IMG/VR virus record: IMGVR_UViG_3300028920_000001
Coordinates: 186,001-250,000 of that record
DNA: 64,000 nt
Direction: 5' to 3' (one strand)
Each line of letters starts with the position of its first letter. Within the stretch, counting starts at the first letter, position 1. The position numbers and the translations under genes are program-made. The notes under the pieces are model-generated. The model was not told the DNA's origin and searched no databases. It saw only the letters and a list, made by a program, of their open reading frames with translations. Of the stretch, positions 25,916-56,476 are shown piece after piece.

Positions 25916-26158
25916 CTAGGACCACATAACCTCGAGAATTATCTCCATGGCCATGGAATCCTGGAGGTTATTCAGAACCACCAAGTCTACGCCCATTTCT
26001 TTCCAATTCTCTATCCAGCCTGGATGACATTCCTCACATCTACCTGAAATAAATCTATGTGGGAAGATGCTGAGTCGATGAGGACAATAGGTCCAATAAG
26101 CGGCTGGTTTCCCGCAGATGAAGCACTCACTGAGGTCAGGATAAATTGATGGTCTCAT
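25916..26158 (-). CDS. IMES-tail protein, Cys-rich family (close paralogue of 24380)
   Basis: CFICG...PHRFISGRC; ends EIILEVMWS. Confidence 0.75.
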   Translation of the reverse strand: MRPSIYPDLSECFICGKPAAYWTYCPHRLSIFPHRFISGRCEECHPGWIENWKEMGVDLVVLNNLQDSMAMEIILEVMWS

Positions 26159-26601
26159 TCTTCCATTAGCTCCATGACCACCAAAGAATTCACGAAATTG
26201 CGGAGGTCTCCGTAGTAGTACATCTCGGGCTGAATGACCCGATGAACTCCATTTATCAGCATCCCCCACTGAAATTGGAGATTGTAGAACCGGAAAATTG
26301 GCTCCTGAGTGCAGTGTTTTTCATCTATAAATTTGACGGCTGTTAAGCCCGGAAGGCTCCCGTCTGAAAACGTAGTCAAAGTGGCCACCCGACGTACGCT
26401 CTTGTAAATTTTAAACTCACCTAAGCAAGACGCGGGAATTGGTGTAATTCCTAAAGTAACTACTAAATAGCCATGACGGGCGAACTCCGGTTCAATTTTG
26501 TTCCGGAGTTTCATCTTCAATTTGCGATCTAATCCTGCGACCTTCATCAACCCGGCTCCCAAACCATAAATTTGGTCCATTAACCAAATTTTGTGATACA
26601 C
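26155..26601 (-). CDS. IMES-tail protein
   Basis: ends SLVVMELMEE. Confidence 0.65.
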   Translation of the reverse strand: MYHKIWLMDQIYGLGAGLMKVAGLDRKLKMKLRNKIEPEFARHGYLVVTLGITPIPASCLGEFKIYKSVRRVATLTTFSDGSLPGLTAVKFIDEKHCTQEPIFRFYNLQFQWGMLINGVHRVIQPEMYYYGDLRNFVNSLVVMELMEE

Positions 26602-29282: not shown

Positions 29283-29363
29283 AGCCCGCTTATGTGCTCT
29301 AATAAGAAATTCTCGAGCTCCAGTTGACAACTGCTCGCGAGCTCGTCGAGTTGGAAAAAGTTG

Positions 29364-29437
29364 TGGGACCCGTCGGGTTCGAACCGACAACAGCCCGCTT
29401 ATGAGGCGGGGGCTCTGACCGATTGAGCTAGAGTCCC
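29364..29437 (-). tRNA. tRNA with CAU anticodon (elongator Met or Ile2)
   Basis: GGGACTC/GGGTCCC acceptor; CCCGC-CTCATAA-GCGGG; GGTTCGAACCC; paired 1:72, so not initiator. Confidence 0.88.
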
Positions 29438-37472: not shown

Positions 37473-37874
37473 TCAGACCCCGAACTTCTCGTGAATCTGG
37501 GCGGCAGCTTCGTCGTCCAAGCAGGCCGTCTGCTCTGCTCGGTAGTGGGCCGTCAACTGCTTGCTGTACTTGCAGACGATCCCTTCGATCTTGCCGGACT
37601 CTTCCTCGGTCAGCTCCTCACCTGCGATCACCTTCTCGGCCAGCCGGCTGCCGTTCACGGCATGGCTGCTCATGAAGCCACGCTTGTTCTTCCACTTGGT
37701 GTCTTTGGTCTCCCGCTCGTCCTCGGTCTGCCGGCGATACAGGACCAGCAGGCACTGCAGGCGGAAGTCTGCGTCGTCGGCCAGCCGTTCGGCGACCTGC
37801 TTCTTGGTGACGTAGGGGTAGCTGTTGTTGGCTGCGGGGTTGATCGCGAAAGTCGGAATCTTGGTGTCGGTCAT
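37473..37874 (-). CDS. RQTEDE...GFMSSHA family, paralogue 3
   Basis: promoter and GGAGG upstream. Confidence 0.85.
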   Translation of the reverse strand: MTDTKIPTFAINPAANNSYPYVTKKQVAERLADDADFRLQCLLVLYRRQTEDERETKDTKWKNKRGFMSSHAVNGSRLAEKVIAGEELTEEESGKIEGIVCKYSKQLTAHYRAEQTACLDDEAAAQIHEKFGV

Positions 37875-37978
37875 TGTCGTTGCCTCCAGCCAAGGATACG
37901 GAGTTCGACCCGAGACCTACGCAGGGAATCTGTCGCGAAGCGTGAATCGGCCGGCTGGTCCGGATTTCGGACAGATCT

Positions 37979-38040
37979 CCCCGAAGCGTGTCTACTCCGT
38001 CCGGATTTACGGCCTTGTGCCGGGTCACCGTCCGCTTCAA
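37979..38040 (-). ncRNA. conserved structured RNA motif, copy 2
   Basis: own promoter AGAT-N14-CGTA; covarying inner stem. Confidence 0.55.
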
Positions 38041-38362
38041 AGATAAGTACGTAAAGATAAGGAAGATCTGCACCGATGACTGCCGCTGCGAGGTGGTTTT
38101 CCCACGGCTTCTTCGGCCCGTTCGGTTCTAGAAACCGCACGGTTGCCATCGGTGCAGTGAAGTATACGAAGTGGCCACCATGATTTCCGGCTGCGGAAGT
38201 GCGGATCCGGCCTGCGTATCCGACAGTGACAGCGGGCACGGTTGGCTTCTCAGAGCCGACCCAACTTCCGCTTGCAGCCCCTTGCCGTGACAGCCCACCT
38301 CCCGCCCGGACCATCGCGGCCGGGCGGGAGGAAATCTTGGGGTACGACAGGTACACGAGGAC

Positions 38363-38620
38363 ATGATGGCTGATTTGACCAAGCTCTGCGCCAGCAAAGA
38401 TCCGGATGACCTGTTTACCGTTTGCAATGGGACTTGCACGGCCGGGTTCGACCAAGACGGGTCTACGGGCCGAGAGATCTACGAGAACGGAATCCGACTC
38501 GGCCGAAAGCTCGGGTCAAACCCAAGAGCCAAGCTCTTCACGTACTCAAACGGCCAAACGGCCTGGTTTTTCGTGTACACAGACGAAGACGAGCTGGTCA
38601 CCCGGCTGAACACCATCTGA
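38363..38620 (+). CDS. hypothetical protein (paralogue of 21218)
   Basis: NGIRLGRKLGSNP..KLF. Confidence 0.7.
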   Translation: MMADLTKLCASKDPDDLFTVCNGTCTAGFDQDGSTGREIYENGIRLGRKLGSNPRAKLFTYSNGQTAWFFVYTDEDELVTRLNTI

Positions 38621-38668
38621 CCGGAAATCTCACGCCACGCCAGGTAGAAGAAACCGGAGGCAATTGAA

Positions 38669-39037
38669 ATGAAAAAGACGACCAAAGCTCACCTGATCGC
38701 GGTTTCCCTTCTCGGACTGGCCATGGCAGCAGCCCCTGCGTCCATGATTCTCAACGCGCCTGATGCCAACGCGCGGGTCGCCCATCCGGCTCCTTCCGCA
38801 AGCGAAGCTACTGTGGCTCCGGAGGCGTCCGTTCCGGCTCCTCCGGCCGTCGTTGAGCTGGACGAGGTCAAGGTCGTGGGGAACCCGAAGCCTGCGACGT
38901 CGGCCCGTCCTGCGGCCAAGAAGACCCACAAGAGCTGGACCTGTCACCGGGTGCCGCTCGCGCAGAACCGGCCTGCCCTGGCGACCAAGGACAGCGCCCC
39001 GGCCAACCAGACGGTCCAGCTCTGCGAGTGGCTGTAA
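38669..39037 (+). CDS. secreted Pro/Ala-rich protein
   Basis: signal peptide MKKTTK-hydrophobic; two C-terminal Cys. Confidence 0.7.
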   Translation: MKKTTKAHLIAVSLLGLAMAAAPASMILNAPDANARVAHPAPSASEATVAPEASVPAPPAVVELDEVKVVGNPKPATSARPAAKKTHKSWTCHRVPLAQNRPALATKDSAPANQTVQLCEWL

Positions 39038-43170: not shown

Positions 43171-43245
43171 TTAGGCCCGGCACTCCCGTCAGATTTCCGT
43201 TAAATTTCCTGATGGTGATGCTTATATTGAATGTACAATATTAGA

Positions 43246-43473
43246 ATGAAATCTGGTACGCCTATTCGATATAAATTTAGTTTTAATCCCCGTAGCTTTT
43301 CTTCGGTTCAACACACGTTTATTGGATATGGGCGTTTAGCTTATACGATGCGCGATGTGATGAATTCGCATGTAATTAGGGATATAAGCGGACATGAATA
43401 TTCATTTACACCTGATGAGCTCGAGCCAATTACTGAAGAAGAATTTGTAATTGCTCAGATTATGCAATCATGA
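43246..43473 (+). CDS. IMES-tail protein, SH3-like family (paralogue of 47927)
   Basis: ends ITEEEFVIAQIMQS. Confidence 0.75.
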   Translation: MKSGTPIRYKFSFNPRSFSSVQHTFIGYGRLAYTMRDVMNSHVIRDISGHEYSFTPDELEPITEEEFVIAQIMQS

Positions 43474-43527
43474 AACCAATTATCTGAATTGGTTTCATGG
43501 CTGGATTCTAAAAATGTAATATAAAAT

Positions 43528-43887
43528 ATGGCTAGGTACCCATTTCTTTACCGAACCCGAAGTGGCAAATATCCGAGCCTAAAATTACTAGACGAGCTTA
43601 ATTTGTTATCTGAGCCCGTAATGGAAAAATTTATCGCCAAGATGAAGGTTGATTTTCCAATTTCTTATCATGATGGCTTAATCATTGTTGGAAATCCGAT
43701 TTACAACATAACTGGTATTCAACGGATGTTAATCAAACGTTATACTAATGTCCGCCGTTTAAATAAACGGGCCAAACAACGAAAAGCCAACTACAAGAAA
43801 CTCCGGCGGGAAATTCTATACCAGTATAAGCTCGAGGCTTATGAGCTCAATCAATTGATGGCTGAAGCTAATAGTCGTAACAAATAA
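43528..43887 (+). CDS. basic hypothetical protein
   Basis: TGTA-N9-ATG. Confidence 0.65.
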   Translation: MARYPFLYRTRSGKYPSLKLLDELNLLSEPVMEKFIAKMKVDFPISYHDGLIIVGNPIYNITGIQRMLIKRYTNVRRLNKRAKQRKANYKKLRREILYQYKLEAYELNQLMAEANSRNK

Positions 43888-44132
43888 TGTTTGTGATTCG
43901 TCTTTTAAATCCGGTAATTAGACTCGAAGACGCTGGAAAACCTATCTTTGTTTATTTAGATAAAGAAGGGCCAACTCCTGATGTTGTTTGGAACTGCACT
44001 GATCCTAAAGAAGCTACCCGATTTTCATTAGTTGACGCCAAAATCTTCCAAAATCGAAATCCAAAATGTGAGGTTATTGATGAAATCATTTTGAATGAAT
44101 ATGTTCAATTATTCGACATCATGGAATCATGA
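43887..44132 (+). CDS. IMES-tail protein, MKYVI family
   Basis: ends VQLFDIMES. Confidence 0.75.
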   Translation: MFVIRLLNPVIRLEDAGKPIFVYLDKEGPTPDVVWNCTDPKEATRFSLVDAKIFQNRNPKCEVIDEIILNEYVQLFDIMES

Positions 44133-44155
44133 GTTCGTAGCTGTAATCTAAAGAA

Positions 44156-44380
44156 ATGGAAATTGAGCCTGGAGAGCTCGTTCGGTCTATTTTAGACGGC
44201 CTCTACGGCTGTGTTGTTACTAAAAGTAATATCTTCGATCAAGACGGTCATCGGATTACATTTGATGTGGTGTGGTTTGAAGATGAAGATGACTTAAGAA
44301 CTGATAGAGCTATCGACAGTTCACAAATTCAGCTCGCCACTAACGATGAAAGAATGGTCTTCCACATCATGTGTTCCTAA
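44156..44380 (+). CDS. IMES-tail protein, SH3-like family
   Basis: ends ATNDERMVFHIMCS. Confidence 0.75.
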   Translation: MEIEPGELVRSILDGLYGCVVTKSNIFDQDGHRITFDVVWFEDEDDLRTDRAIDSSQIQLATNDERMVFHIMCS

Positions 44381-44595
44381 TGATTAACCGCCCTATCATA
44401 TGGATGTGTGTTTTTTGTTCAACTAAACAGACTCATATGTTTATTGAAAGGACTGACCATCCTGGAATTGCACTTTATGGATATTGTGAGCATTGTCTTA
44501 AATTTGAGAATGTTCGTAATCATATGAATGACTCAAACATGAAATTTCATGTTCGAGAAGAGATAGAGATTATTTTACCAGTCATGCAGTCTTGA
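44371..44595 (+). CDS. IMES-tail protein, Cys-rich family
   Basis: CVFC...GYCEHC; ends IILPVMQS. Confidence 0.7.
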   Translation: MFLMINRPIIWMCVFCSTKQTHMFIERTDHPGIALYGYCEHCLKFENVRNHMNDSNMKFHVREEIEIILPVMQS

Positions 44596-44596
44596 T

Positions 44597-44869
44597 ATGG
44601 TTGCACTTCAAAAATTTCCTGATCTTTATATTCTTCCTGATTATCCTTATTGGGGCTTAGATTTTGTCGATGATTTTAAAATCAATTTATACTTTATTAG
44701 AGGAGTAACTAAAGTAAACGGAAAACTGAGTTATTACATGTGTTCACCGGAGGCTGTCGGCTTTATTTATAAAGGTGAATTTCGATCTTATGAAAAAATC
44801 AGTGTTTCAGTTGGAGTTCTTCACCAATTACTTCAACATTGGGAAGTATTTCGAATGATGGCCACTTAA
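44597..44869 (+). CDS. IMES-tail protein
   Basis: ends WEVFRMMAT. Confidence 0.65.
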   Translation: MVALQKFPDLYILPDYPYWGLDFVDDFKINLYFIRGVTKVNGKLSYYMCSPEAVGFIYKGEFRSYEKISVSVGVLHQLLQHWEVFRMMAT

Positions 44870-44870
44870 A

Positions 44871-45143
44871 TCATGACTCCATAATTTTAGCAACTATATA
44901 TTCTTCTTTACTAACTGTAGTTAAAACATCTGTATCAAGTGGGACAATCTCTCCAGGAGAAATTTCGATCATCCGATAAGTATCTTGTTGAGTTGGAATT
45001 TGAAAGAAATCACTAGTCATGAAGCGATTGCCACCTAATTCTCGCATTTCTTCCTTAGATCGAATAATGCCGTAATTGCTAAATGAATGAGTTTGTTGAT
45101 AAGTTCGATTCCAACTTATTTTGACATAGTCACCAATTTTCAT
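44871..45143 (-). CDS. IMES-tail protein, SH3-like family
   Basis: MKIGDYVKI; ends VSKEEYIVAKIMES. Confidence 0.75.
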   Translation of the reverse strand: MKIGDYVKISWNRTYQQTHSFSNYGIIRSKEEMRELGGNRFMTSDFFQIPTQQDTYRMIEISPGEIVPLDTDVLTTVSKEEYIVAKIMES

Positions 45144-45237
45144 AGAAACGTCCAGAGTGCTATTAAAGGTGCTAAAATCCCTACTGAAATGCCTAGAATA
45201 GTAGCAATTTTTTCTGATTTAGAATACTTAGCAAACA

Positions 45238-45402
45238 TCATTTAGTCACAATCTGTTTTGTCCTAGAACGCCCTGTACCATTACAAGCTGTGCACATCCG
45301 GCTACAAGAATGTGATGCGTCAAACCATCGCCCCTTACCATCACATTCTTTACACATATTTTTAGGCACAATTTTCTTGGTGCGTTGGGGTTGTTTAATC
45401 AT
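45238..45402 (-). CDS. 54-aa DnaJ-type CxxCxGxG zinc-finger protein
   Basis: CKECDGKG...CTACNGTG (translated by hand). Confidence 0.6.
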   Translation of the reverse strand: MIKQPQRTKKIVPKNMCKECDGKGRWFDASHSCSRMCTACNGTGRSRTKQIVTK

Positions 45403-45419
45403 GGATGTAAAGTACAATT

Positions 45420-45782
45420 ATGGCCAGTTTAGAAGAACAAATGCAGGAAATTGTTGGAGAAGAATCTGAAGGTCATAAATTAGCAATGAGAACTCTCAAA
45501 GATTTTGCTCGAGCATTGCAAAAGGCTATTGGAGACCCCTTTGTCGCCAGATTTGAACCAGGATTTGCTATTTGTGATGGATTACAATTTACGTTAAAAG
45601 TCAAATCTGAGTATGCTGAAGATTCTCTCTTCAGAGTTTATGTTCCGTGTGAAGGATTTCCAGTTAAACATAGAAGGTTCGGATCAGCTAACGATATAGA
45701 AGAATTGAATGATATGTTGTACAATCTTTTAGAAGAACAAAAATTAAGATTACGAAGTGTACTGATCTTAGGAAAGCCATGA
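45420..45782 (+). CDS. hypothetical protein
   Basis: TGTA element upstream. Confidence 0.7.
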   Translation: MASLEEQMQEIVGEESEGHKLAMRTLKDFARALQKAIGDPFVARFEPGFAICDGLQFTLKVKSEYAEDSLFRVYVPCEGFPVKHRRFGSANDIEELNDMLYNLLEEQKLRLRSVLILGKP

Positions 45783-46042
45783 ATTTTAAACAAATTATTC
45801 GAAATGCTAGACGTAATTATTTAAAAGATTTTATTCGTGATCAAAAAGTAATTGCAACTGTTCATGGTCAATTTCAAGTTATGGAGAAACAGGAATATGA
45901 AGATTGGATGACGCTTAATCCTGAAGCTTTAAAAAATCCAGATTTCTTTCCGGGTCGTTATTTATTTAATGATACTGAATTCGAGCTTATTAAGCTCGAG
46001 GCTGAACGAGAACGTGAATGGCAGAAGCTTCTTGAATCATGA
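45779..46042 (+). CDS. hypothetical protein, weak tail variant
   Basis: ends WQKLLES. Confidence 0.65.
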   Translation: MNFKQIIRNARRNYLKDFIRDQKVIATVHGQFQVMEKQEYEDWMTLNPEALKNPDFFPGRYLFNDTEFELIKLEAEREREWQKLLES

Positions 46043-46269
46043 GAGTTTTACTTTCAAATAATTTGAATTCCGGACTTTGTTATTGTAATAATCAATGTCG
46101 TTTACCTTGTACCCGATGGTTTATACGTAAGCCAATTGATGGGAATCTGTATATATTCGGACGTTTCGAAAATCATGTACCTCGGCGATGCGCACCAAAT
46201 ATACGTTCTGAGGAATTAATTGAGATTAGCCATGATGAAATGATGGTGTATAAATTAATGGATAGCTAA
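46039..46269 (+). CDS. IMES-tail protein, Cys-rich family
   Basis: ends ISHDEMMVYKLMDS. Confidence 0.7.
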   Translation: MRVLLSNNLNSGLCYCNNQCRLPCTRWFIRKPIDGNLYIFGRFENHVPRRCAPNIRSEELIEISHDEMMVYKLMDS

Positions 46270-46644
46270 TTATGATTCCATAATTTGTTCGATTAGTAGT
46301 GAAGCTATTGATAAATAACTGATTCCAAAAGTTTCTTCACATTGAGTACGTTCTGCATCAGTTTGATTTACAGGGTACTTAAAACGTCTTTGTTGATCTG
46401 TGAAAAACGCTTCTCGAGCTTCTTTTTCTGTGTTAAATAATTTGGCTTGACGCCAATGCTCTACAAATCTATTATTAAATCCATTTTCATTTGATTTGAT
46501 ATCAGGATTCCCCGTCCAGAATTCAATTGTTCTTCCAAATTTATTAAAAAGACCGTTCTCAGTTCTTTTACAAACTAAATATTTTGTAGCTTCATCCTCT
46601 ATAATATCCACCCAATTCCCATTTTTCCAAACTATATGTTTCAT
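46270..46644 (-). CDS. IMES-tail protein, MKYVI family
   Basis: ends SLLIEQIMES. Confidence 0.75.
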   Translation of the reverse strand: MKHIVWKNGNWVDIIEDEATKYLVCKRTENGLFNKFGRTIEFWTGNPDIKSNENGFNNRFVEHWRQAKLFNTEKEAREAFFTDQQRRFKYPVNQTDAERTQCEETFGISYLSIASLLIEQIMES

Positions 46645-46880
46645 ATGTTCATTACTAAATGAACTGTTGCTTCTGGTTCTGAAATTTCTTCAAATTCATG
46701 TCGATAAAGAATAACTTTAAATCCATCAAAAAAATCGATATAATAAACTGGTTTGTTGCAAATAGTGTTATTCCAATCACAAATTAATAAACCATATTGT
46801 TCCGTATTTGTTCGTTTAACTACATGGTCTTGATGATAATTCTTTTTAACTTGATACTTATCTAGGTCAATTTCTGTCAT
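46641..46880 (-). CDS. IMES-tail protein, SH3-like family
   Basis: ends ISEPEATVHLVMNI. Confidence 0.7.
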   Translation of the reverse strand: MTEIDLDKYQVKKNYHQDHVVKRTNTEQYGLLICDWNNTICNKPVYYIDFFDGFKVILYRHEFEEISEPEATVHLVMNI

Positions 46881-46929
46881 TTAAATATTGTACATCGGAA
46901 ATAAAATGATAGTCTGTGTAAATTAGTAC

Positions 46930-47217
46930 ATGTCCCTTGTGGTCATCGAGCTCAAGCCCAACCTTTCGTTTCAGAAAACTCGTAATTTACTTCATTGGTA
47001 CACTCCTAAGATTATCCGGTCTCATCCTGAATATGGAAGATATAAACTCAAGACTGAACCTGCGCAGCATGCTCCTCCAGTTAAAGTCAGGGGCCCATTT
47101 ACTGATGTTGATTCTCGAGGACTTACTTTTGAAGTAGACAATCGAGAAGATGCAGAGAAATTTGCAGCTCATATGCAAAAGTCGGGTTGTGTTGCTAACC
47201 ACTGGATTGAGGACTAA
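46930..47217 (+). CDS. hypothetical protein
   Basis: TGTA-N9-ATG. Confidence 0.7.
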   Translation: MSLVVIELKPNLSFQKTRNLLHWYTPKIIRSHPEYGRYKLKTEPAQHAPPVKVRGPFTDVDSRGLTFEVDNREDAEKFAAHMQKSGCVANHWIED

Positions 47218-47219
47218 TT

Positions 47220-47894
47220 ATGGGATACGATATCTATACTCTTGCTCGATCGATGCAACTTAAGCAGAAGATGCTTAAATTCATGCGTAAAAATCATGTT
47301 ACTTGGGAAAAATTGACGGGCTGTGAGCATCGATATACTTCAAAAATCTTGCATGGACGGCAATTATTCGCGTCTAAGTACGCTCTTGGATTTCATTACG
47401 GAGTGGTAACGGGACTCGAGCGGGAATATGCCTATTCATTGGTTCGATGGATGGCGCTCAAAGTTGGAAAGAGATGTCGCACCTTCGGCCATAATGGAAA
47501 GGAAGGCCGGAGTAACAAGCCTATTCCTTATTATGTGTATGATGGCTTTGAACGCTTTCCAGTGTTTACTGAACAATGTGGACTTCCCTCGGGTACTTAT
47601 CGGGCAGTTGATAACTATGGAATTCTCAAGAGACCATATCTAATAGATTTAAGAATGGCTGGCTTGCATAAAATTCATTTTGATAAGATGAAGAAAACCA
47701 AAGATGGAAAATATTTAATTTTTCCCATCACGGCTGCCGATTGTAAAAAGTATGGACTGAGAAAAGGCAGTCATATGAATACCCCGGCGGCTCAAAAATT
47801 ATTTGAAAGACTGGGACGGGAAGCTGTCCGCCGGGATCGCAAGTTCATCCGAGATGAAATTAAGAGACTCGATGCGTTATGGGAAGGATCATAA
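47220..47894 (+). CDS. hypothetical basic protein
   Basis: long ORF. Confidence 0.7.
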   Translation: MGYDIYTLARSMQLKQKMLKFMRKNHVTWEKLTGCEHRYTSKILHGRQLFASKYALGFHYGVVTGLEREYAYSLVRWMALKVGKRCRTFGHNGKEGRSNKPIPYYVYDGFERFPVFTEQCGLPSGTYRAVDNYGILKRPYLIDLRMAGLHKIHFDKMKKTKDGKYLIFPITAADCKKYGLRKGSHMNTPAAQKLFERLGREAVRRDRKFIRDEIKRLDALWEGS

Positions 47895-47926
47895 TTTTTT
47901 TCAAGTGTAAAATTATTTAAGTAAAA

Positions 47927-48154
47927 ATGAATGTACTTCTTCTGCGGTCTGGCGCCCCTTATAAATATACCGTAAATATACCGTATAACCAGCAGCCTCT
48001 TACTGGTTATGGTAGGTTTTTATATGCTACGCAAGATGTCTTAGATCCAATTATTTTAAGAAGAATTGATGGTATAGAATTGTGCTTTTCTCCATCTAAT
48101 TTGAAAAGAATCAGCGAAGAAGAATATCTAACAGCTGAAGTTATGGAATTATGA
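47927..48154 (+). CDS. IMES-tail protein, SH3-like family
   Basis: ends ISEEEYLTAEVMEL. Confidence 0.75.
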   Translation: MNVLLLRSGAPYKYTVNIPYNQQPLTGYGRFLYATQDVLDPIILRRIDGIELCFSPSNLKRISEEEYLTAEVMEL

Positions 48155-48369
48155 ATAATTGTAAAGTAGGATATGAAAGCAAGTCTAGAAGCTCGAATAG
48201 CAAAAGTATTGGAAAAACTTGAAGAAGAATCTATATCCATCACTTACAATAAACCAAAACACATGTTAAATGTAGGTGACGCTCAAACTCGAAATGTTCA
48301 AGGAAAATTTCTGAGTCAAACTACTTATAGTGAAATTGTTCAATTACTTGGTGGAACTGTTGATTAAAG

Positions 48370-48573
48370 TTAAAGTTCCCAGCCCATTCTTTCTCGAGCC
48401 CAATTTACAAGGATTTTGAAATTATCTTTATCAAAAGTGATAGATTCATGCGCTTGATCAAAAGCCAGACGAATCTTAAAACCTGATTTAGATACTGATA
48501 CATTAAATATTTTTCCTTTACTTTCAAGATAATCGCTTATTTTAAGTAAATCAGCTTTAGGTTCGTCAGACAT
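48370..48573 (-). CDS. hypothetical protein
   Basis: coupled ORF. Confidence 0.6.
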   Translation of the reverse strand: MSDEPKADLLKISDYLESKGKIFNVSVSKSGFKIRLAFDQAHESITFDKDNFKILVNWARERMGWEL

Positions 48574-48884
48574 TATGATTCCATAATTTCTTCTACGTCA
48601 ATAGACTTTACTAAATGAATTAAATCTTCTTGTTCGTAACCTAATGCGTGGGCATGAAGTAAGACTTCACTAAGGTCTTCGTTGGCTTGTTTAATAATCA
48701 TATCTATGGCTTGTTCAATGGCGTCATAAATAGTTTCAGTTTGGATAGTTTTAGTGTTTTCTAGACGGTTTTTAGTGTAAATCCAAGCTCCTTTAGCATC
48801 TAATTCTACCCAAATCATGAGTTTACGTCCAATTTCTAGATGATTACCACTTCCTAACGATTTTTGTAGAACAATTCGATTCAT
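48573..48884 (-). CDS. IMES-tail protein
   Basis: ends KSIDVEEIMES. Confidence 0.75.
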   Translation of the reverse strand: MNRIVLQKSLGSGNHLEIGRKLMIWVELDAKGAWIYTKNRLENTKTIQTETIYDAIEQAIDMIIKQANEDLSEVLLHAHALGYEQEDLIHLVKSIDVEEIMES

Positions 48885-48934
48885 ATCATATTATACATGA
48901 AGAAGTAGAAACGCTATTAGATGTAGATTAAAAC

Positions 48935-49342
48935 ATGAATAATATTCGGGAAGCTGATATTAAGAAAGCTCTGGTTGGATATGAAATTATAAATGTTCGT
49001 AAAAAACGCGGTGGAGAATTTTGTGATGAACAAATGACTCTTACGTTGCGCCATTCTAAAACTAAAGAAGAGCTAAAAGCTAAAATTTTCTATTACAGTA
49101 ACGATCATGAGATTTGGGTTGAAACTTATCAAAGACCTCGAAATAGTAAATCGAAGAAAAAACGTGAACATCAATGGAAACGAATCGGAGACGCTGGAAC
49201 TTGCATTCATGAATCATCCATCTTTAAATGTGAACATTGTGGTTGTATGGCTACTGTTACTGTAGGACATGCCATTAATCCTAAAGATTACCCACCTTGT
49301 GTATCCCGAAGTTTCATGAAAGCTTGGCGCAAGAAACACTAA
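48935..49342 (+). CDS. hypothetical protein with HQW...CEHC motif
   Basis: TGTA-N9-ATG. Confidence 0.7.
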   Translation: MNNIREADIKKALVGYEIINVRKKRGGEFCDEQMTLTLRHSKTKEELKAKIFYYSNDHEIWVETYQRPRNSKSKKKREHQWKRIGDAGTCIHESSIFKCEHCGCMATVTVGHAINPKDYPPCVSRSFMKAWRKKH

Positions 49343-49548
49343 TGCAGTATGTTATCTGGAGTATTACTTTTAGTAAATATTACTATGAGCATTATAATGG
49401 ATTTGATCACTTTCATAATATTGAAAAAGCTTCATATTATTCTTCCAGAGAAGAAGCTATGCTGGCAGTTAAAAGACGACCAGATCCTGATAGTCTAATC
49501 ATTTATAGCATAGATGAAGCCATAGTCGCGGAGATTATGAGGAAATGA
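49342..49548 (+). CDS. IMES-tail protein, MKYVI family
   Basis: ends YSIDEAIVAEIMRK. Confidence 0.75.
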   Translation: MQYVIWSITFSKYYYEHYNGFDHFHNIEKASYYSSREEAMLAVKRRPDPDSLIIYSIDEAIVAEIMRK

Positions 49549-49820
49549 ACAGTAAATGTCATGCTGCCATGAAGTACGCTATTCGAATTGCAAATGCTCC
49601 ATTTCCAGTCTGGATTGAAGCTATTTATCCTGATCAACTTGGAAAGCCAGGGCCTAAAGATAAATATGGTTTAGGTGCTAGTCATTTTTACACTGATTTT
49701 CCTCGACGTGCGACTTTATACACTACTGTTCAATTAGCGATTGAAGCTAGATGCGTAGAAGATCCGATAGAAATCATTACTGAAGATGAATTACAGGTGT
49801 ATATTATAATGGATGAGTAA
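49545..49820 (+). CDS. IMES-tail protein, MKYVI family
   Basis: ends ITEDELQVYIIMDE. Confidence 0.75.
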   Translation: MNSKCHAAMKYAIRIANAPFPVWIEAIYPDQLGKPGPKDKYGLGASHFYTDFPRRATLYTTVQLAIEARCVEDPIEIITEDELQVYIIMDE

Positions 49821-50139
49821 TTATAAAGAAACATTAGAACGATACATCATTGGTGAATACGTTAAAGTCATGGCTGGTCGGACTAAGTTAACAATCATGC
49901 TCGGTGATGGGGTTATAGCAACCGAACTTGATAAGAATGTATTTCAAATTGGTTCTCGCGTGAGAATTGAATATAATCACAAATACCAAGGAGAACATTA
50001 CGGAACAATAACTGAACGTTTTTCAAATCGCGGAACTTGCATGGTAGAATTCAAAGAATCGATTTTAGAATGGAGAATGCGAGATCTTAAATTAATAAGC
50101 GAAGATGAATTTCAAATAGGCATAATCATGGAGATGTAA
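49813..50139 (+). CDS. IMES-tail protein, SH3-like family
   Basis: ends ISEDEFQIGIIMEM. Confidence 0.75.
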   Translation: MSNYKETLERYIIGEYVKVMAGRTKLTIMLGDGVIATELDKNVFQIGSRVRIEYNHKYQGEHYGTITERFSNRGTCMVEFKESILEWRMRDLKLISEDEFQIGIIMEM

Positions 50140-50364
50140 ATGGGTGATTTATTCAGATCGATGGCTGCCTCTTTAAATAAGCCTGTTCGAATTTTGGATA
50201 ATCATATGTGTGGAACAGTTATTTCTCGAGGATTAGACGGTTCACTTGAAATTCAAATTTATGGTTCTAAAGAAATCCAATTTGTTAGATTTCAAGATGT
50301 TGAGTTCATGGCAGCAGACGAATTTGAACAAATTAAGACATTGTTGGAAATCATGCAATCATGA
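50140..50364 (+). CDS. IMES-tail protein, SH3-like family
   Basis: ends KTLLEIMQS. Confidence 0.7.
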   Translation: MGDLFRSMAASLNKPVRILDNHMCGTVISRGLDGSLEIQIYGSKEIQFVRFQDVEFMAADEFEQIKTLLEIMQS

Positions 50365-50522
50365 TTGAAGTAACGGTATGGCTCGGCTCGAAACTCAAAG
50401 ATTTAATTACCAGAATGTCAAGATTTTTGAATCAATTAGCTTTGAACCGAATTTAATTGCTTTTAACATAGTTCTTATTTTATCATCCAGGAAGTCATGA
50501 AATTATGACTGTATGTTAAAGT

Positions 50523-51050
50523 GTGAATTTAATCATAGCTTTTATTATAGTATTTAACTTTGGGGTTTGTTTTGCTTTAATCTGGCAGATACGACGTGCC
50601 AAAGATGAGGCTGCTAGATATGAGGCATTGAATATACTAAAAACAAATGTCAGTAAGCTTGATTTAGGTTTATATGAGCAAAGAACTTTTTCTTTTGATT
50701 CCAGTTCTTGTTTTGTTCAGTACGAATCGATTAGGTTCAGTATTAGACTTCATAAATATAAATACAGAAAGTATGACGCAGAAATTACTATTGATTATTT
50801 CAATCAAGTTGAATTTGAAGTATTGGAAAGCAGATTTTGCGGATTATCTTTCAGTGATTTAAGAGCTACCATTCAGCATATGGTCGAGAGACTAAATGCT
50901 AAATTAATCAGAGCTACCATGCATTTAGGTGTTCTTACTCAAAATGATATAATTTCAATTATGCTAGATGAAACTACGAGAGTAAGATCACGCGAAACAT
51001 TAATTACTATTATCGATCAATCGATAGTAAAAAGAATTATGGAAAGTTAG
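50523..51050 (+). CDS. IMES-tail protein with N-terminal TM segment
   Basis: ends QSIVKRIMES (Ser encoded by AGT). Confidence 0.75.
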   Translation: MNLIIAFIIVFNFGVCFALIWQIRRAKDEAARYEALNILKTNVSKLDLGLYEQRTFSFDSSSCFVQYESIRFSIRLHKYKYRKYDAEITIDYFNQVEFEVLESRFCGLSFSDLRATIQHMVERLNAKLIRATMHLGVLTQNDIISIMLDETTRVRSRETLITIIDQSIVKRIMES

Positions 51051-51063
51051 TTGTACTATTTAA

Positions 51064-51585
51064 ATGATGATTACGTTTGTTCAATACAGATTAGCTGATG
51101 GTGAAATTGCACCTCGTTGTAAGAGTAACTGTATTGGTCTTTCGTCAAATGCTTTAAAGAGTAATAAAAAGTGGTCCTGTTTACAAATTACGGATCATCC
51201 TCCATTATTTGAATTTTCGAGCAATTACACTATATTAATTTCTCAAATTAACCAACTGAATTTTAAATGCACTAATAAATGGTTACAAAAAATGGCATAT
51301 GAAAAGTTTGTCCAAGATTTTCAAGATTTTTTAGAAAGACAAATATTTAGTGTTTGGCATAGTTGTCCTTTCGTGACTGTTATTTTTGAGCCACTCAATG
51401 TTTCACCAGCTGATAGTCCTCCATCTAAAGGGATGGTTCATTTTATTAACATGACTTTAGTTATGGGGAATCAGCCAGTAGCAAAATCTAATTGTTGCGA
51501 AAAGTGGCTCCCTAAATTTTGGGATTCAGATTTTGTTCAGGAACGTCGTAACTTTTATATGGTTGAAAGGATCATGCAATTATAA
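51064..51585 (+). CDS. IMES-tail protein
   Basis: ends YMVERIMQL. Confidence 0.7.
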   Translation: MMITFVQYRLADGEIAPRCKSNCIGLSSNALKSNKKWSCLQITDHPPLFEFSSNYTILISQINQLNFKCTNKWLQKMAYEKFVQDFQDFLERQIFSVWHSCPFVTVIFEPLNVSPADSPPSKGMVHFINMTLVMGNQPVAKSNCCEKWLPKFWDSDFVQERRNFYMVERIMQL

Positions 51586-51776
51586 TGCCTGTTACTCAAG
51601 TGACTCCGTATATGATGAAACCAGGACAATATGTTCGACAAGGTGATCATCTGTCTATAGTTGAATCTTGTGAATTTTGTAATAAGCCCAGATCGATATT
51701 TAATGGGAAGTGGGTTTCAAAGATGAGAGCTCCAACCGAGAAAGAACATATTGTGTCTGATGTGATGCAAACGTAG
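51585..51776 (+). CDS. IMES-tail protein, SH3-like family
   Basis: ends PTEKEHIVSDVMQT. Confidence 0.7.
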   Translation: MPVTQVTPYMMKPGQYVRQGDHLSIVESCEFCNKPRSIFNGKWVSKMRAPTEKEHIVSDVMQT

Positions 51777-51962
51777 ATGTAATCTAAATTATGAGTGATT
51801 GGGAAGTTTCTGGTTATTTAAGACGTCAAGACCGGGCTGATAAGGCTTTGTATGAGTCTATTTCTAGAGTAATCAAAGTTTTTGAAGAAATGGAACGAAA
51901 ACCTAAAGTTCTACGAGAACCAATAGCTAAATTAAAGAAACAAACTAAAAAACATAAAAAGG

Positions 51963-52340
51963 GTGAAGATGAATAATCGAACAGACTTGCCTAAAGATCA
52001 TGCTGAATGGCAAGCTCAGTTAGAAGCAAAAAATCAAGAGTCGCTTCAACTTGCCATATCTGTTTTAAAACGCGTTCCTCAAATTGTTGGTGAATTTGCA
52101 CCTGTACAAGTTCAGCGTACTTTTGCTGGAATTATTAATGGATACAAATATCGGAAACGTCGTAACTCTGGCAACATATTTCTTCATATGTTGCCAGAGT
52201 TAGCAAAACAATCTGCTCGAACATTCGGACTTTTTGAGCCTGATGAATGTGTGCTGATAGCTCAGGCGATTGTTGATGAAACTGCATCTAATAATGAACT
52301 TCACAATCTTTTGAAATACGAAAGGTACGAAAATGACTGA
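51963..52340 (+). CDS. hypothetical protein
   Basis: ORF in run. Confidence 0.65.
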   Translation: MKMNNRTDLPKDHAEWQAQLEAKNQESLQLAISVLKRVPQIVGEFAPVQVQRTFAGIINGYKYRKRRNSGNIFLHMLPELAKQSARTFGLFEPDECVLIAQAIVDETASNNELHNLLKYERYEND

Positions 52341-52540
52341 TCAAGAACGAATTGCTGAGCTCGAGCAACGAATCGCTGAGCTTGAATATGCTCTAGCTGG
52401 AACAATGATTTCATTGTCTTCTCGGGATGGTGTAATACCTGATCCTCATATAATTCAAGCGATGCAGGCGAGTAAACAAGTTCAATTTAAAATTATGTTT
52501 GATGACGAACGCATAATAATGGTCAAACTTGAAATTAAAG

Positions 52541-52918
52541 ATGCGTGAAGAAGTATTTAACGTAAAATTTCTACATTATTGCTACGAAATCTTTATCCGA
52601 GGTCCTGGTTATCGGGTTGAGCGTATTACTGTAAGTCCATATGATTATCAAGATATTCTTAAAGGCGGTAAAGAAACGTTAGATCTAACAAATAATCGTT
52701 TTGATTTAAAAAGAGGAAAAGTAGCTACCCTTTTTGGAACAGACTTGTATGTAAACAAAATTGCTCCTATTGGAATAATTGAAATTAAACATGGTAGACA
52801 TAAAATTAAAACATCTCATGTGTTTATTTCAACCTGGGAAAGTCATTCGGGAGCCATTTTAGATTGTAGACATGCTTCTTGTAGAAAGTATTTAATTGCT
52901 CATATAATGGAGACCTAG
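52541..52918 (+). CDS. IMES-tail protein resembling a fragment of a major capsid protein
   Basis: RVERITVSPYDYQDILKGG...LKRGKVATLFGTDLYVNKIAPIG; ends YLIAHIMET. Confidence 0.55.
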   Translation: MREEVFNVKFLHYCYEIFIRGPGYRVERITVSPYDYQDILKGGKETLDLTNNRFDLKRGKVATLFGTDLYVNKIAPIGIIEIKHGRHKIKTSHVFISTWESHSGAILDCRHASCRKYLIAHIMET

Positions 52919-53003
52919 ATCCAAATGTAAGTTTAAATAGTGAAGATCCTGATCCCCCTTGGGATCTTCCGAGAGCCTGGATACCCTCCGGGCTCTTGTT
53001 TAT

Positions 53004-53207
53004 TTAGAAATAATTCCAGAGAATGTCTCTCTTATATTTATTTTTAATAATATCAAATTTATCACTTTGAATGAAGTGACAAGTTACTCGTCGCCTTCTT
53101 CTATTACTTTCTTGCTTCCAGCTTTTCAGGGAAGGAAAGTATCCCCAATAACGACAATTGTGATGTTTGGCCCGATGGATATTTTTGCGTCGATAGTTGA
53201 TGTGCAT
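53004..53207 (-). CDS. small basic protein
   Basis: Arg-rich ORF. Confidence 0.55.
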   Translation of the reverse strand: MHINYRRKNIHRAKHHNCRYWGYFPSLKSWKQESNRRRRRVTCHFIQSDKFDIIKNKYKRDILWNYF

Positions 53208-53234: not shown

Positions 53235-53639
53235 CTATTTTACAGTCTGCACAAAATCCTTGATTTCATTAGGTGGATAACCTGATAAGTAACCGACTAA
53301 GTAATGATAATCTTTTCCAGTTAAATTATCCTGACACCATCTTAGTAATTTAGCCATGTCTCTATTTTCAGGCAAATATGCAGATACACCGTCAGATTCC
53401 AGGCCGTATTTTTCAGCGTTTTCTTTAAGTTCATCCTCTCGCCAACCATGTGTTAATGGTTTAGTTCCTTTTTTAACAAATCGACAGGCTTTTTCAACTG
53501 AATAGTCCCAGCCTTTAGTTTTAGGGTCCCAATTCACTGCTTTTTCAAACGCTGGAATATATTCTTCAGGCACCTTATCTTTTATGATAGATACCATTGA
53601 ATCTTCCGTCATTTTACGTGCAATCTTAAATAGATCCAC
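53235..53639 (-). CDS. hypothetical protein with N-terminal MDLFKIARK motif
   Basis: C-terminal GYLSGYP..EI..F. Confidence 0.7.
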   Translation of the reverse strand: MDLFKIARKMTEDSMVSIIKDKVPEEYIPAFEKAVNWDPKTKGWDYSVEKACRFVKKGTKPLTHGWREDELKENAEKYGLESDGVSAYLPENRDMAKLLRWCQDNLTGKDYHYLVGYLSGYPPNEIKDFVQTVK

Positions 53640-53913
53640 GCTTCAATGACTAGATAAAAATTTAATGGAAAAGTTTAAATGCCTTCTTCTTGATCTCCCT
53701 CTCGCCAGTCATGAAGACCCAGGCTAATGCTTGGGTCTTCGTTTATTTGGGAAGGTATCTATTTCTTCTTGATTAAACTTAATTATTATTTCTTCTACAG
53801 ATTTCCATTCATGTTCACATTGTTTGCAACGATAATAAGTAAGCACATTTATACCATCTGAATGGCCGCCTAATCTTTCTATAAATCTATGATCACACAG
53901 AGATAATAATGAA

Positions 53914-54141
53914 TTAAACTGTCATGATTTTGAGCACATTAGCTTCTTTACAGTCTATTGGGACTCCAACGTGTTTTAATAATTCACCAGGAGTAGTTTT
54001 CTTTAATTTGTCGAGCTTAATTTTTGTTCCTCGAGTAGTAATTCTGTGACCACAACCCGGACAGCACCAAGTTCGATGAAGAGTCGGTTGTGCTTCTCTA
54101 ATCTTCACCCAATTATGCTGCTTCATATTTTCATATACCAC
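53914..54141 (-). CDS. IMES-tail protein, HxW...CxxC family
   Basis: ends KEANVLKIMTV. Confidence 0.7.
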   Translation of the reverse strand: MVYENMKQHNWVKIREAQPTLHRTWCCPGCGHRITTRGTKIKLDKLKKTTPGELLKHVGVPIDCKEANVLKIMTV

Positions 54142-54182
54142 TGGCCTTAATAAATTTACAGTTCTAATCTCTTGGTTCGGAC

Positions 54183-55334
54183 GTGGATTTACACGCGATA
54201 GCCATCCGGATTGCTAGCCGGCATTTAGGATTTAGTGGTGTCCGTGGGTGGCTTTACACTGATGGGAAATACGCTTCACTTAAAGATCGAGATTCAAACA
54301 TGCACCGGGAATTTGCTCAAAAGCATATTCTTGAAGACGCTGGACTAGATCAATTTTTAGAAGCTCAAAAAGGTAAGATTTCAGAGCATACTTTGAAGGA
54401 ATTGGAAAGTGCCCCAACTTTCTCAATTTTTCCAGCGTACATAGGAACTGATGAACAGGAGTTGATAGACTCGGTGGTAGAGAATACCGCACTTACTCCT
54501 GAAATTTACAAAAAATACCAAGAAGACGCCGAAAAAGCCTATTCTGAAGATTATGACGCTATTCGAATTTGGGGTCAGAGCTCAGAATTAACTGCTGACT
54601 TTTATGGATGGGATCGGAAAGCCTTATTAACTCTACAGGATTTTGTAATAGATAATCCGGAAGTTCAGAAGCCGAATCTGAAAGTCAAACTCGGTGATTA
54701 TAAGACCGGAAAGACCTATGATACCACTATTGAAGATTTACTAGCTTATTCCGGGAAGGGTAAATCACTAGTATCTAGTCAATTACGTAGAATTGCAGCT
54801 CGAGTTGCATTTTTCCATCAAGCTTTTACTGGATTACGATGGTGGGTCTTCATCGATGGTAATAAGATTATACCAATAAAGGGATTTCATGATGCTTTTG
54901 CTGAAGCCTATTTACTGAAAGACTTAGGTATTGATAAATATTTAGAAGAAAATCAAGAAAGTTTAGGAGATTTAGGTTATGCTATAAAGGTTTCTGGGCC
55001 TAAAGCTATTTGGTATCGAAAAGTAGAAGAGATCCCAGAGGCAGTGTTTAATGATACTGCTTTGACTCCTGAAGTATTTGAACGTTATAAAGAAGATACT
55101 GAGGAGTCATTTTCTAAAGATTATAATGCAATTCGAATGTGGGAAATGGATCCAGGTACATTAAATGTTGAATATTATAAATGGGATGACGCGGCTCTTC
55201 AGACTTTAAAGAACTTTTTGCGAAAAGAGCACTTAACGGACAATGTATTTATTGAAGAATCGAGTACTGATAGGCATAAATTATTATCTATAAAGGCCGT
55301 ACTCAAGTTACGAAGCATAAATAAACTATTCTAA
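54183..55334 (+). CDS. protein made of two tandem about 190-aa repeats, each starting with IAxR[IV]A
   Basis: TALTPE...DY.AIR.W...Y.WD..AL.TL occurs twice. Confidence 0.8.
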   Translation: MDLHAIAIRIASRHLGFSGVRGWLYTDGKYASLKDRDSNMHREFAQKHILEDAGLDQFLEAQKGKISEHTLKELESAPTFSIFPAYIGTDEQELIDSVVENTALTPEIYKKYQEDAEKAYSEDYDAIRIWGQSSELTADFYGWDRKALLTLQDFVIDNPEVQKPNLKVKLGDYKTGKTYDTTIEDLLAYSGKGKSLVSSQLRRIAARVAFFHQAFTGLRWWVFIDGNKIIPIKGFHDAFAEAYLLKDLGIDKYLEENQESLGDLGYAIKVSGPKAIWYRKVEEIPEAVFNDTALTPEVFERYKEDTEESFSKDYNAIRMWEMDPGTLNVEYYKWDDAALQTLKNFLRKEHLTDNVFIEESSTDRHKLLSIKAVLKLRSINKLF

Positions 55335-55337
55335 TAA

Positions 55338-55592
55338 TTATTTAGTAATAATAGGTTTGGCTTCAACGCCTTCCTGCGCTAAAATATGATTTTGATCATT
55401 AAGTCGAAGAATGACTTCATGTTTGTGTGTTAGAACGACTTGACCCTCCGGAGTTTGGAGAAAAGGTTGCACACAATGGGCATGGAGTCCCGTGTCCCAT
55501 TCTTCACAGAAATGATCGAGTTGTCCAGTTTTCCCACAATGGAAACATTCACCTTCAAATGGGTCAACTGGCCAGATTCCTCCACAAGGCAT
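55338..55592 (-). CDS. Zn-binding hypothetical protein
   Basis: CFHC...HFCEEW...HAHC. Confidence 0.65.
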   Translation of the reverse strand: MPCGGIWPVDPFEGECFHCGKTGQLDHFCEEWDTGLHAHCVQPFLQTPEGQVVLTHKHEVILRLNDQNHILAQEGVEAKPIITK

Positions 55593-55603: not shown

Positions 55604-56476
55604 CTATTGGTTAGTTTTTAATTTTTCTTCTGCTGTTCGGCCAAGAATTTCTGCCATCTTATCTAAAGTTAAATCGCACATGTCATCAACCCAATCCCCG
55701 ATAATATAAAGGTCGCTCCTGCCTTTCAAAATTCCAAATAAAATAGGATCTTTGCGTGCAGCTCTCTCAGCTTTAGTTTCTTCCCATGATTTACCATCCG
55801 GATCATAATGAAGTACAGCGTAATTGTCGAAAATTTCGAGCTCATCAGCTTTCATTTTAAGTTGGGTAAGTTCATCTGGAATTGGCCTGGTGAAATTTTT
55901 AATGTAACTCAGACACATTCCCTTTTTTGATTTCTTGTAAAATTCGACAATAGTTTGTTCTGAAACGTAACTTGTGATACCAACTGAAAGCATGAGCGTT
56001 TCTACTCTAAATGCATTGAGTCCATCTTTCAATTTTTCTAAGAGCGCTATTTGTCCAGCTTGTTTAGCTTTGATAATGGCTTGTTCGTAACCTTTAGCTC
56101 GAGATTCTACTAAATTGATATCCTGGGCAGAGCTTTTTATATTAGTGAAGAACTCTAATATGCTCATCTCAGGAACAGCTTCTTTTATTGGTTTTCGAAA
56201 TATATTTAAAAACCAATTCCAAAATCTTCCCCAAAAGTTTACTGAACGTGCTTCTCCAACAGGACGTACTGCAAGTTGGGTTATTTCTCCTGAATTTCCT
56301 CCTGTAACCATGAAATCAAAGTTATTGCCTGAAAATTCTATATTATCCCCATATTTGGAATTAGAATTCTTTATCCTTTCTTTTCGTTCTTTTTCTAATC
56401 TGATATATTTAGGAAGTCCCATATCAGGATGAAAATCTTCAATAATTGCAAGCCGCTGTTCAGTTCGATCTAACAT
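55604..56476 (-). CDS. conserved phage hypothetical protein
   Basis: long ORF; KDPILFG...LYIIGDW..CDLTLD. Confidence 0.75.
   Translation of the reverse strand: MLDRTEQRLAIIEDFHPDMGLPKYIRLEKERKERIKNSNSKYGDNIEFSGNNFDFMVTGGNSGEITQLAVRPVGEARSVNFWGRFWNWFLNIFRKPIKEAVPEMSILEFFTNIKSSAQDINLVESRAKGYEQAIIKAKQAGQIALLEKLKDGLNAFRVETLMLSVGITSYVSEQTIVEFYKKSKKGMCLSYIKNFTRPIPDELTQLKMKADELEIFDNYAVLHYDPDGKSWEETKAERAARKDPILFGILKGRSDLYIIGDWVDDMCDLTLDKMAEILGRTAEEKLKTNQ

Follow-up and report, generated by a model that had tools for sequence, protein, structure and literature searches.

A free-standing copy of the major capsid protein A-domain with a shared C-terminal tail in an uncultivated 427-kb phage from marine sediment

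Why would a large phage carry, apart from its structural genes, a 125-aa protein that resembles a piece of its own major capsid protein (MCP) and ends in a tail found on many other small proteins? This question was raised by a preliminary description of the locus, made from the sequence alone, which proposed that the protein is a free-standing fragment of the A-domain segment of an HK97-fold capsid protein, too short to form a capsid, and that it might bait capsid-sensing defence systems and deliver them via its tail to a common hub. We studied the gene within a window of 64,000 nucleotides, corresponding to bases 186001-250000 of the 426,960-bp virus record IMGVR_UViG_3300028920_000001. The record has direct terminal repeats, is estimated to be 100% complete and has 40% GC. 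A public run from a marine sediment metagenome contained 99% of the locus; only DNA runs and no RNA run contained it.

[quoted passage not shown] Its ATG overlaps the stop codon of the upstream gene by 8 nt, and a terminator-like hairpin with a 12-bp stem (7 GC pairs; stem-loop at 52970-52998) follows, after which the next genes are on the opposite strand. Thus, the gene is the last one of a plus-strand operon of small ORFs (Table 1). The three ORFs without tail directly upstream are missing from a syntenic relative (L003). No convincing inverted repeats were found flanking the inverted segment downstream. An orthologue with 84% amino acid identity, which keeps the ending AHVMET, was found in the same neighbourhood on two independent JGI metagenome contigs. 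Nei-Gojobori analysis of this single pair gave dS 0.26, dN 0.08 and dN/dS 0.31, so the frame is under purifying selection.

Table 1. Features of the locus, other ORFs named in the text and small ORFs matching the MCP profile. Coordinates refer to the window or to the whole genome record, as indicated.
Coordinates	Reference	Strand	Length (aa)	Feature	MCP residues matched	E-value	C-terminal ending
1265-2407	window			Weak AAA_2-type ATPase			
5669-6064	window			Tail-bearing ORF matching the first half of the ribosomal L7/L12 C-terminal domain			
49813-52548	window	+		Upstream co-oriented run of small ORFs; five carry the tail, three have no tail (51791-52548)			IMEM, IMQS, IMES, IMQL, VMQT (the five with tail)
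52529	window	+		In-frame TTG, possible alternative start adding 4 codons			
52541-52918	window	+	125	Gene of the free-standing MCP A-domain paralogue (P0001), stop at 52916-52918			LIAHIMET
52550-52801	window	+		Residues 4-87, core homologous to the MCP: helix, strand, DYxDIxKxG helix, strands ending in PxG	166-248	4e-19 (hhalign)	
52790-52882	window	+		Residues 84-114, His/Cys-rich stretch (H84, H87, H93, H102, C109, H111, C114)			
52874-52915	window	+		C-terminal tail, last 14 residues			...RKYLIAHIMET
52970-53008	window	+		Intrinsic-terminator-like hairpin plus T-run			
53235-54141	window	-		Next genes			
55338-55592	window	-		Small ORF with the second tail			[PA]KKI[IV]TK
304457-305350	genome		297	Major capsid protein			LIVTR
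77462-77653	genome	-	63	MCP-matching ORF	32-72	5.5e-5	PKKIITR
73397-73564	genome	-	55	MCP-matching ORF	26-61	8e-4	PKKIITK
109873-110397	genome	+	174	MCP-matching ORF	50-86	5.5e-4	
313419-313625	genome	+	68	MCP-matching ORF	91-117	0.007	TIMES
316894-317256	genome	+	120	MCP-matching ORF (13 of 21 residues identical)	271-292	0.01	
138870-139391	genome	-	173	MCP-matching ORF	173-203	0.02	VMEA
135468-135662	genome	-	64	MCP-matching ORF	117-146	0.03	PKKIITK

We next studied if the resemblance to capsid protein is real. The major head protein of this genome matched phrog_2522 ('major head protein') at E 1.3e-43 and was a weak PF05065 hit, and its profile hit the solved capsid protein gp27 of phage G (6wkk_A) at E 1.3e-60; gp27 is the phage G MCP according to PMC12484599 and the record annotation. 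The MCP is 85-99% identical among the best 120 of more than 1,600 database relatives, many of them on 300-440-kb contigs, whereas more distant relatives are those of an uncultured 485-kb phage (73% identity), Tunturiibacter phage Tunturi_5 (45%) and phage G (36%). At residues 186-239 the MCP reads RVARVYMNAKDYADIRKFGRDVLDIES...ATGWNAQFIVSRLVPQG. BLASTP of the small protein against the MCP gave 38 bits and E 1e-8 as a single comparison, with 28% identity over 79 residues (residues 25-98 against MCP 186-264), and against all 2,170 ORFs of the genome the MCP was the only significant hit (E 9e-6).

Searches with the single sequence reached no further: Pfam and PHROGs returned no hit, megablast and tblastn against GenBank phages found no match, and a scan of IMG/VR with the single protein found no relative, the family alignment being too diverse for pattern scanning. 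An exhaustive HMMER search of 1.8 billion representatives, in contrast, found three true relatives, namely a protein of 135 aa (45% identity, ending RVMGS), one of 121 aa (ending HVLRS) and one of 290 aa (P0005) that holds two tandem copies of the same segment, whereas a fourth hit (P0004) is a WD40-repeat false positive. Profile-profile comparison of the alignment of these proteins with an MCP alignment gave an hhalign probability of 99.1% over the core region, and the fragment-family profile alone hit residues 155-231 of 6wkk_A at E 2.3e-11.

An AF2 model of the protein had a mean pLDDT of 70 and a pTM of 0.66, with 71-92 per 10-residue block over residues 21-80. The model is only moderate, and as its alignment included one MCP row, it is not independent of the sequence evidence. 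Foldseek returned mostly phage capsids, the best at E 6e-3 and none at or below 1e-3. VIA-align gave Z scores of 4.2-6.5, and all but one of the top 50 rows (3p8a_B, a hypothetical protein) were HK97-fold capsid or encapsulin chains; the model (residues 1/7 up to 92-121) aligned to HK97 gp5 chains from residues 249-254 to residues 374-382. ESM Atlas shape hits were capsid families as well. Since Z scores below 8 are regarded as middling, the structural evidence is supportive rather than decisive, and the sequence evidence carries the claim. Absence of any significant profile or structural match to HK97-fold capsid proteins had been named beforehand as the refuting outcome; such matches were found. 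An AF2 model of the full MCP, built from a shallow alignment of 20 near-identical sequences, reached a mean pLDDT of only 35 and served merely as a rough guide to secondary structure.

In the canonical HK97 fold the part after the spine helix is the A-domain (domain names as in 10.1101/2022.09.09.507160), and the assignment made in the preliminary description is therefore right. The N-arm, E-loop, spine helix and P-domain sheet, which make the lattice contacts, are missing, and the protein therefore cannot form a shell. Where the MCP has its last P-domain strands, the fragment has the His/Cys-rich stretch. With upstream His, a CxHxxC-type motif recurs in the relatives P0002 and P0003 and in family member L093, whereas L092 has CxxC...Cx4C. 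A zinc-knuckle or zinc-ribbon-like small domain has four Cys/His ligands in conserved spacing and bound metal; here the spacing varies and model confidence is low (pLDDT 50-60), and a metal site that may stabilise the excised domain is only an inference.

To follow the distribution of the family, five related complete or near-complete genomes (G001 to G005; G000 denotes the genome studied here) were searched with the family profile. The MCP was found in each. Two extra free-standing copies were found in G003 (136 aa and about 172-205 aa) and two in G001 (107-159 aa, ending CGHENCRVVREVMES, and 72-100 aa), whereas G002, G004 and G005 had none at threshold. The G003 protein P0127 ends ...ERLVRLC, which echoes the MCP C-terminus ...GLVRLIVTR, and looks like an A-domain with the P-domain hairpin cut out and replaced by an acidic linker. 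The family occurs patchily among these related 360-440-kb phages and is multi-copy and fast-evolving next to a nearly frozen MCP, which is the pattern of an accessory gene.

Further capsid-protein pieces and two shared tails

BLASTP and an HMM of the MCP were then run against all ORFs of the genome. The profile found eight small ORFs at E<=0.03, covering MCP residues 26-72, 50-86, 91-117, 117-146, 173-203, 184-242 and 271-292 (Table 1), and the A-domain copy is one of at least eight such ORFs. Reversed and five shuffled ORF sets gave no hit at this threshold, the best being 0.37. In an all-against-all BLAST of the 138 largest ORFs only the MCP showed this pattern of several small ORFs each matching a different segment. 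The same profile found further small frames in G002 (MCP 8-68 at E 6e-9 and 229-292 at E 4e-9), G003 (16-48 and 115-165) and G001 (14-56, 10-66 and 223-259). One such frame occurs in the cultivated phage Tunturi_5 (MCP 89-118, E 3e-4), and none was found with this profile in phage G or LR745208. The A-domain copy is therefore the best-folded member of a clade-wide set of ORFs resembling pieces of the MCP.

The tail of the protein belongs to a class of about 170 ORFs. A PSSM and consensus derived from 167 of them (median 94 aa, mostly between genome 60 and 250 kb, 54 in the window) span the last ~14 residues and read E(-14), D/E/K(-11), E(-10), V/I(-7), I/V/L(-4), M(-3), E/D/N/Q(-2), S(-1)-COOH; the protein studied here, ending L-I-A-H-I-M-E-T, fits the shorter form [IV]xx[IVL]M[EDNQ][ST]-COOH, with hydrophobic residues at -7 and -4, Met at -3, an acidic or amide residue at -2 and Ser/Thr at -1. 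An origin of the tail as a DNA-level or translational-coupling artefact was rejected, because codons at -4, -2 and -1 vary synonymously and positions -7 and -10 are conserved at the protein level only. The bodies of these proteins are unrelated to one another (6% mean column identity for 52 in the window) and have almost no family hits, with the exception of the L7/L12-like ORF, whose match exceeds the Pfam cut-off. The strict DNA pattern for [IV]-M-E-S-stop occurred 36, 56, 22, 5 and 4 times in G000 to G004, but 0 times in the backwards-pattern controls and 0 times in LR745208, Tunturi_5 and phage G. The tail is therefore confined to this close clade.

A second tail, [PA]KKI[IV]TK, ends nine small ORFs, three of which match the MCP profile, while one more shows a resemblance seen only by eye. 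It resembles the C-terminus of the MCP itself. Both tails and the MCP C-terminus share hydrophobic residues at -4 and -3, and the first tail and the MCP also share them at -8 and -7. In the model of the A-domain copy the tail is drawn as a strand at the place of the last HK97 A-domain strand, at low confidence, and we regard this as a lead and nothing more. Derivation of the tail from MCP residues 132-145 (QAAEDDRVFSIMDA) was too weak to claim: this stretch scored 9.6 bits against the tail PSSM, a score reached by roughly 1 in 15,000 internal windows, which gives p of about 0.03 over the whole MCP. The tail is not a copy of the tag of the phage tmRNA, which is ANDNASLAIAA. No receptor was found. 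No ClpP or Hsp70 gene is present in the genome, which speaks against a ClpXP or Hsp70 client signal served by phage-encoded partners, although DnaJ-type proteins and the weak AAA_2-type ATPase are encoded.

Possible roles of the fragment

The analysis itself established that the gene encodes a diverged, excised MCP A-domain of the phage G gp27 type (of which we are highly confident), that it is under purifying selection and behaves as an accessory gene in the non-structural arm, and that it belongs both to the tail set and to a set of MCP-piece ORFs. What the protein does, including any binding of a partner by its body or its tail, is inferred. As resemblance to the MCP is the only property these pieces share, and many are too short to fold alone, the simplest common mechanism is competition with authentic MCP for a partner. 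The A-domain copy would act in trans as a molecular mimic of the capsid protein, competing for something that binds the A-domain surface. Mimicry of any MCP partner seems slightly more likely than not. We think that the most likely partner is a host factor recognising this very conserved protein, for example a capsid-sensing defence protein, in which case the tail would be a shared address or handle recognised by one common partner; this version is possible but falls short of even odds, and the mechanism as a whole is put forward tentatively. In favour are the patchy presence, the copy-number changes including the tandem copies in P0005, the rapid divergence to only 28% identity with a frozen MCP, and the presence of a whole set of MCP-piece ORFs. 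That capsid proteins trigger defence systems such as CapRel is established (PMC13728456). On the other hand, a fragment that binds a capsid sensor might trigger it rather than block it, and the residues shared with the MCP (D35, D38, K41, G43, D48, G59, P76, G78) are invariant in the MCP alignment, about half of them (D38, G43, D48, G59, P76) recurring in phage G gp27, so that they look fold-determining and not like a preserved epitope. The interpretation in the preliminary description was thus partly supported: the capsid fragment with the shared tail is real, while the decoy and hub remain conjecture, since no sensor, host or hub could be identified and the context does not single out defence decoys over interference with capsid assembly.

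A role as capsid-assembly modulator or minor capsid component appears less likely, although it cannot be dismissed. A-domains make the axial contacts within HK97-type capsomers, N-arms and E-loops make the contacts between subunits, and the other fragments resemble exactly those elements; moreover, several of them end in the MCP-like KKIITK, and the low-confidence placement of the tail strand in the model would fit as well. MCP paralogues with assembly roles are known, for example T4 gp24 and satellite capsid-size proteins. In this view the fragments would bind MCP subunits at capsomer contacts and could delay or shape assembly of the giant shell, poison the capsids of co-infecting relatives or satellites, or sit in the particle. 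However, the gene lies about 66 kb from the structural module (238.5 kb versus 304.5 kb in the genome) among small accessory ORFs, it is absent at threshold from three of five related genomes with near-identical MCPs and so is not needed for assembly, and it has diverged greatly although the MCP surface it would have to fit is almost invariant. A complex prediction of the MCP with the protein, made without control runs, gave an ipSAE of 0.00 and is evidence neither for nor against binding. Also unlikely, to a similar degree, is an exapted fold, in which the A-domain is only a stable small scaffold and an unrelated function is set by the His/Cys stretch and by the tail, the latter tying it to the same process as the other tail-bearing proteins, for example timed turnover, localisation or packaging. 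The fold-determining nature of the conserved residues, the conservation of the CxHxxC motif and the tail among P0001, P0002, P0003 and L093, the unrelated bodies of the tail-bearing proteins and the occurrence of similarly shaped small proteins in other phages (see below) agree with it, but it does not explain why many different, non-folding MCP segments (30-40-aa N-arm, E-loop and helix pieces) are kept as small ORFs in several genomes. A decaying remnant of an MCP duplication, suggested by low identity, partial coverage and patchy distribution, is very unlikely given the intact frame in three metagenomes, the dN/dS value, the operon context with a terminator, and the conservation of the C-terminal motif and tail across members only 26-45% identical to the protein. 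Chance resemblance, to which the empty single-sequence searches and the weak Foldseek E-values might point, is refuted by the significant BLASTP, hhalign, genome HMM and solved-capsid comparisons; the reversed and shuffled ORF controls are clean.

A more far-reaching and improbable possibility is that this clade encodes a library of partial-domain mimics, that is pieces of its own capsid protein (N-arm, E-loop, spine helix, A-domain, C-terminus) and of host proteins such as ribosomal L7/L12, each fused to one of two C-terminal address tags. One common receptor, possibly the capsid protein itself because both tags share the hydrophobic register of the MCP C-terminal strand, would then collect, time or dispose of the mimics together with whatever they have captured, as a modular, tag-based decoy system.

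Capsid proteins are the most constrained and most abundant phage proteins and a favoured target of bacterial immune sensors. This phage cannot easily change its capsid protein, which stays 85-99% identical across a clade with very different gene content, and instead carries a changing set of small genes resembling pieces of it. This would be a new way either to manage capsid recognition by the host or to control assembly of a giant shell. The excised A-domain is the clearest and most testable member, because it folds as a domain and has orthologues and paralogues. The shared tails suggest a one-receptor, many-clients arrangement covering roughly a quarter of the genes, and identity of the receptor would explain about 170 ORFs at once.

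Comparison with known systems

The protein is a homologue of HK97-fold MCPs of the phage G gp27 type (PDB 6WKK; phrog_2522), with the same order of helices and strands over the A-domain core and the family signature DYxDIRKxG...LD...G...PxG. However, it is not a capsid-forming member: only about 85 of about 297 residues are represented, a His/Cys stretch and a C-terminal tail are added, the gene lies outside the head module and is not conserved across the clade, and the single sequence does not reach Pfam or PHROG thresholds. Specialised MCP paralogues, such as the T4 gp24 vertex protein and satellite capsid-size proteins of the HK97 fold, likewise arise by duplication of the capsid gene followed by specialisation, but those are complete folds that enter the shell, whereas this is a single excised domain that cannot tile a lattice.

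Capsid-derived triggers of abortive infection provide the frame in which a decoy would make sense, since a limited piece of capsid protein or a small phage protein is what the host sensor sees. The Gol region of T4 gp23 is the trigger of Lit. For CapRelSJ46 the triggers are the MCP and the small protein Gp54 (PMC13728456). In those cases the trigger is the capsid protein itself or an unrelated small protein; no separately encoded capsid-fragment decoy and no description of the tails turned up in the literature searched.

With regard to the tails, short C-terminal address peptides load cargo into HK97-fold shells, as do encapsulin cargo-loading peptides and the C-terminal targeting tail of the HK97 maturation protease, and SaPI1 CpmB mimics the scaffold C-terminus. 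Here, too, one short C-terminal peptide is shared by otherwise unrelated proteins, and hydrophobic positions -8, -7, -4 and -3 are in register with the MCP C-terminal strand LVRLIVTR, but there is no sequence similarity to those peptides and about 170 carriers is far more than any known cargo set. Finally, small proteins of similar predicted shape exist in other large phages, including Erwinia phage Y3 and Pseudomonas phage PaBG (BFVD), and in two Atlas clusters of 141-146 aa, and excised A-domain-like proteins may therefore be more widespread.

Genomic surroundings

GC content differed sharply within this single genome, being 0.50-0.60 at 26-40 kb of the window and 0.33-0.38 at 44-64 kb. The block of ~2.4 kb between the gene under study and a transposase-like gene (phrog_10081, E 1e-21) was inverted relative to the close relative L003, in which the three tail-less ORFs were absent; when the flanks were searched for inverted repeats, no convincing ones were found. 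A 383-aa ORF produced no family hit and, by eye, consists of two similar halves; the motif ALTPE..(K/R)Y(Q/K)ED.E...S.DY.AIR.W occurs twice.

Coordinates of the features, in window or whole-genome numbering
Numbering	Position	Strand	Feature
Window	9439-9690		First tail class (example)
Window	22502-26601	-	First tail class (example)
Window	43231-52918		First tail class (example)
Window	55338-55592	-	Second tail class
Genome	73000-77653	-	Second tail class
Genome	114694-115041		Second tail class
Genome	135468-135662		Second tail class; ORF matching an MCP segment
Genome	231238-231417		Second tail class
Genome	73397-73564		ORF matching an MCP segment
Genome	77462-77653		ORF matching an MCP segment
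Genome	109873-110397		ORF matching an MCP segment
Genome	138870-139391		ORF matching an MCP segment
Genome	313419-313625		ORF matching an MCP segment
Genome	316894-317256		120-aa ORF matching an MCP segment (locus L105)
Genome	75832-76185	-	tmRNA (positions 2933-3286 of locus L107)
Window	5669-6067	+	132-aa tail-bearing ORF, L7/L12 match
Window	51791-52548		Three tail-less ORFs
Window	53235-55592		Inverted block (L003 1405-3923)
Window	55604-56476		Transposase-like gene
Window	54183-55334	+	383-aa ORF with two similar halves
Window	9172-9245		tRNA-Lys(ttt)
Window	10791-10887		tRNA-Ile(tat), unusually long (97 nt)
Window	29363-29437		tRNA-Met(cat)
Window	18446-20958		ATP-dependent DNA ligase next to a family X (pol beta-like) polymerase
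Window	1265-2407	-	AAA_2-type ATPase (weak match)
Genome	37762-38847		Full-length DnaJ (plus extra J-domain proteins and a free-standing BRCT domain elsewhere in the genome)

Two classes of C-terminal tails

Across the whole genome, about 167 small ORFs (median 94 aa), of which 54 lie in the window, end in a shared tail that is recognizable at the protein level, E..[VI]..[IVL]M[EDNQ]S-COOH. The strict DNA pattern for [IV]MES followed by a stop codon occurred 36, 56, 22, 5 and 4 times in five related genomes, whereas it occurred 0 times in controls and 0 times in the more distant relatives LR745208, Tunturi_5 and phage G.

A second tail class, [PA]KKI[IV]TK, ends nine small ORFs. The MCP itself ends in LIVTR, and three of these nine ORFs matched the MCP profile over its N-arm/E-loop or spine helix. 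Inside an operon that mixes both tail classes we also detected a phage-encoded tmRNA (Rfam, 106 bits); its tag peptide, ANDNASLAIAA, is unlike either tail.

ORFs matching parts of known proteins

In addition to the gene under study, seven further small ORFs, all of them outside the window, each matched a different segment of the MCP (E 5e-5 to 0.03), while shuffled and reversed controls gave none. The related genomes G001-G003 and Tunturi_5 have their own such pieces. In one of the seven, the 120-aa ORF of locus L105, an internal tail-like stretch (DILNVELVARIMEV, 15 bits on the tail PSSM) is followed by a copy of the C-terminal MCP segment 271-293, and this ORF looks like a tail-bearing protein fused to a capsid piece.

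A partial match to a known domain was likewise observed for a tail-bearing ORF that ends in CELMGS: its residues 50-85 matched the first half of the C-terminal domain of ribosomal protein L7/L12 (PF00542, 30.9 bits against a cut-off of 25.9). It is another partial-domain copy with the tail.
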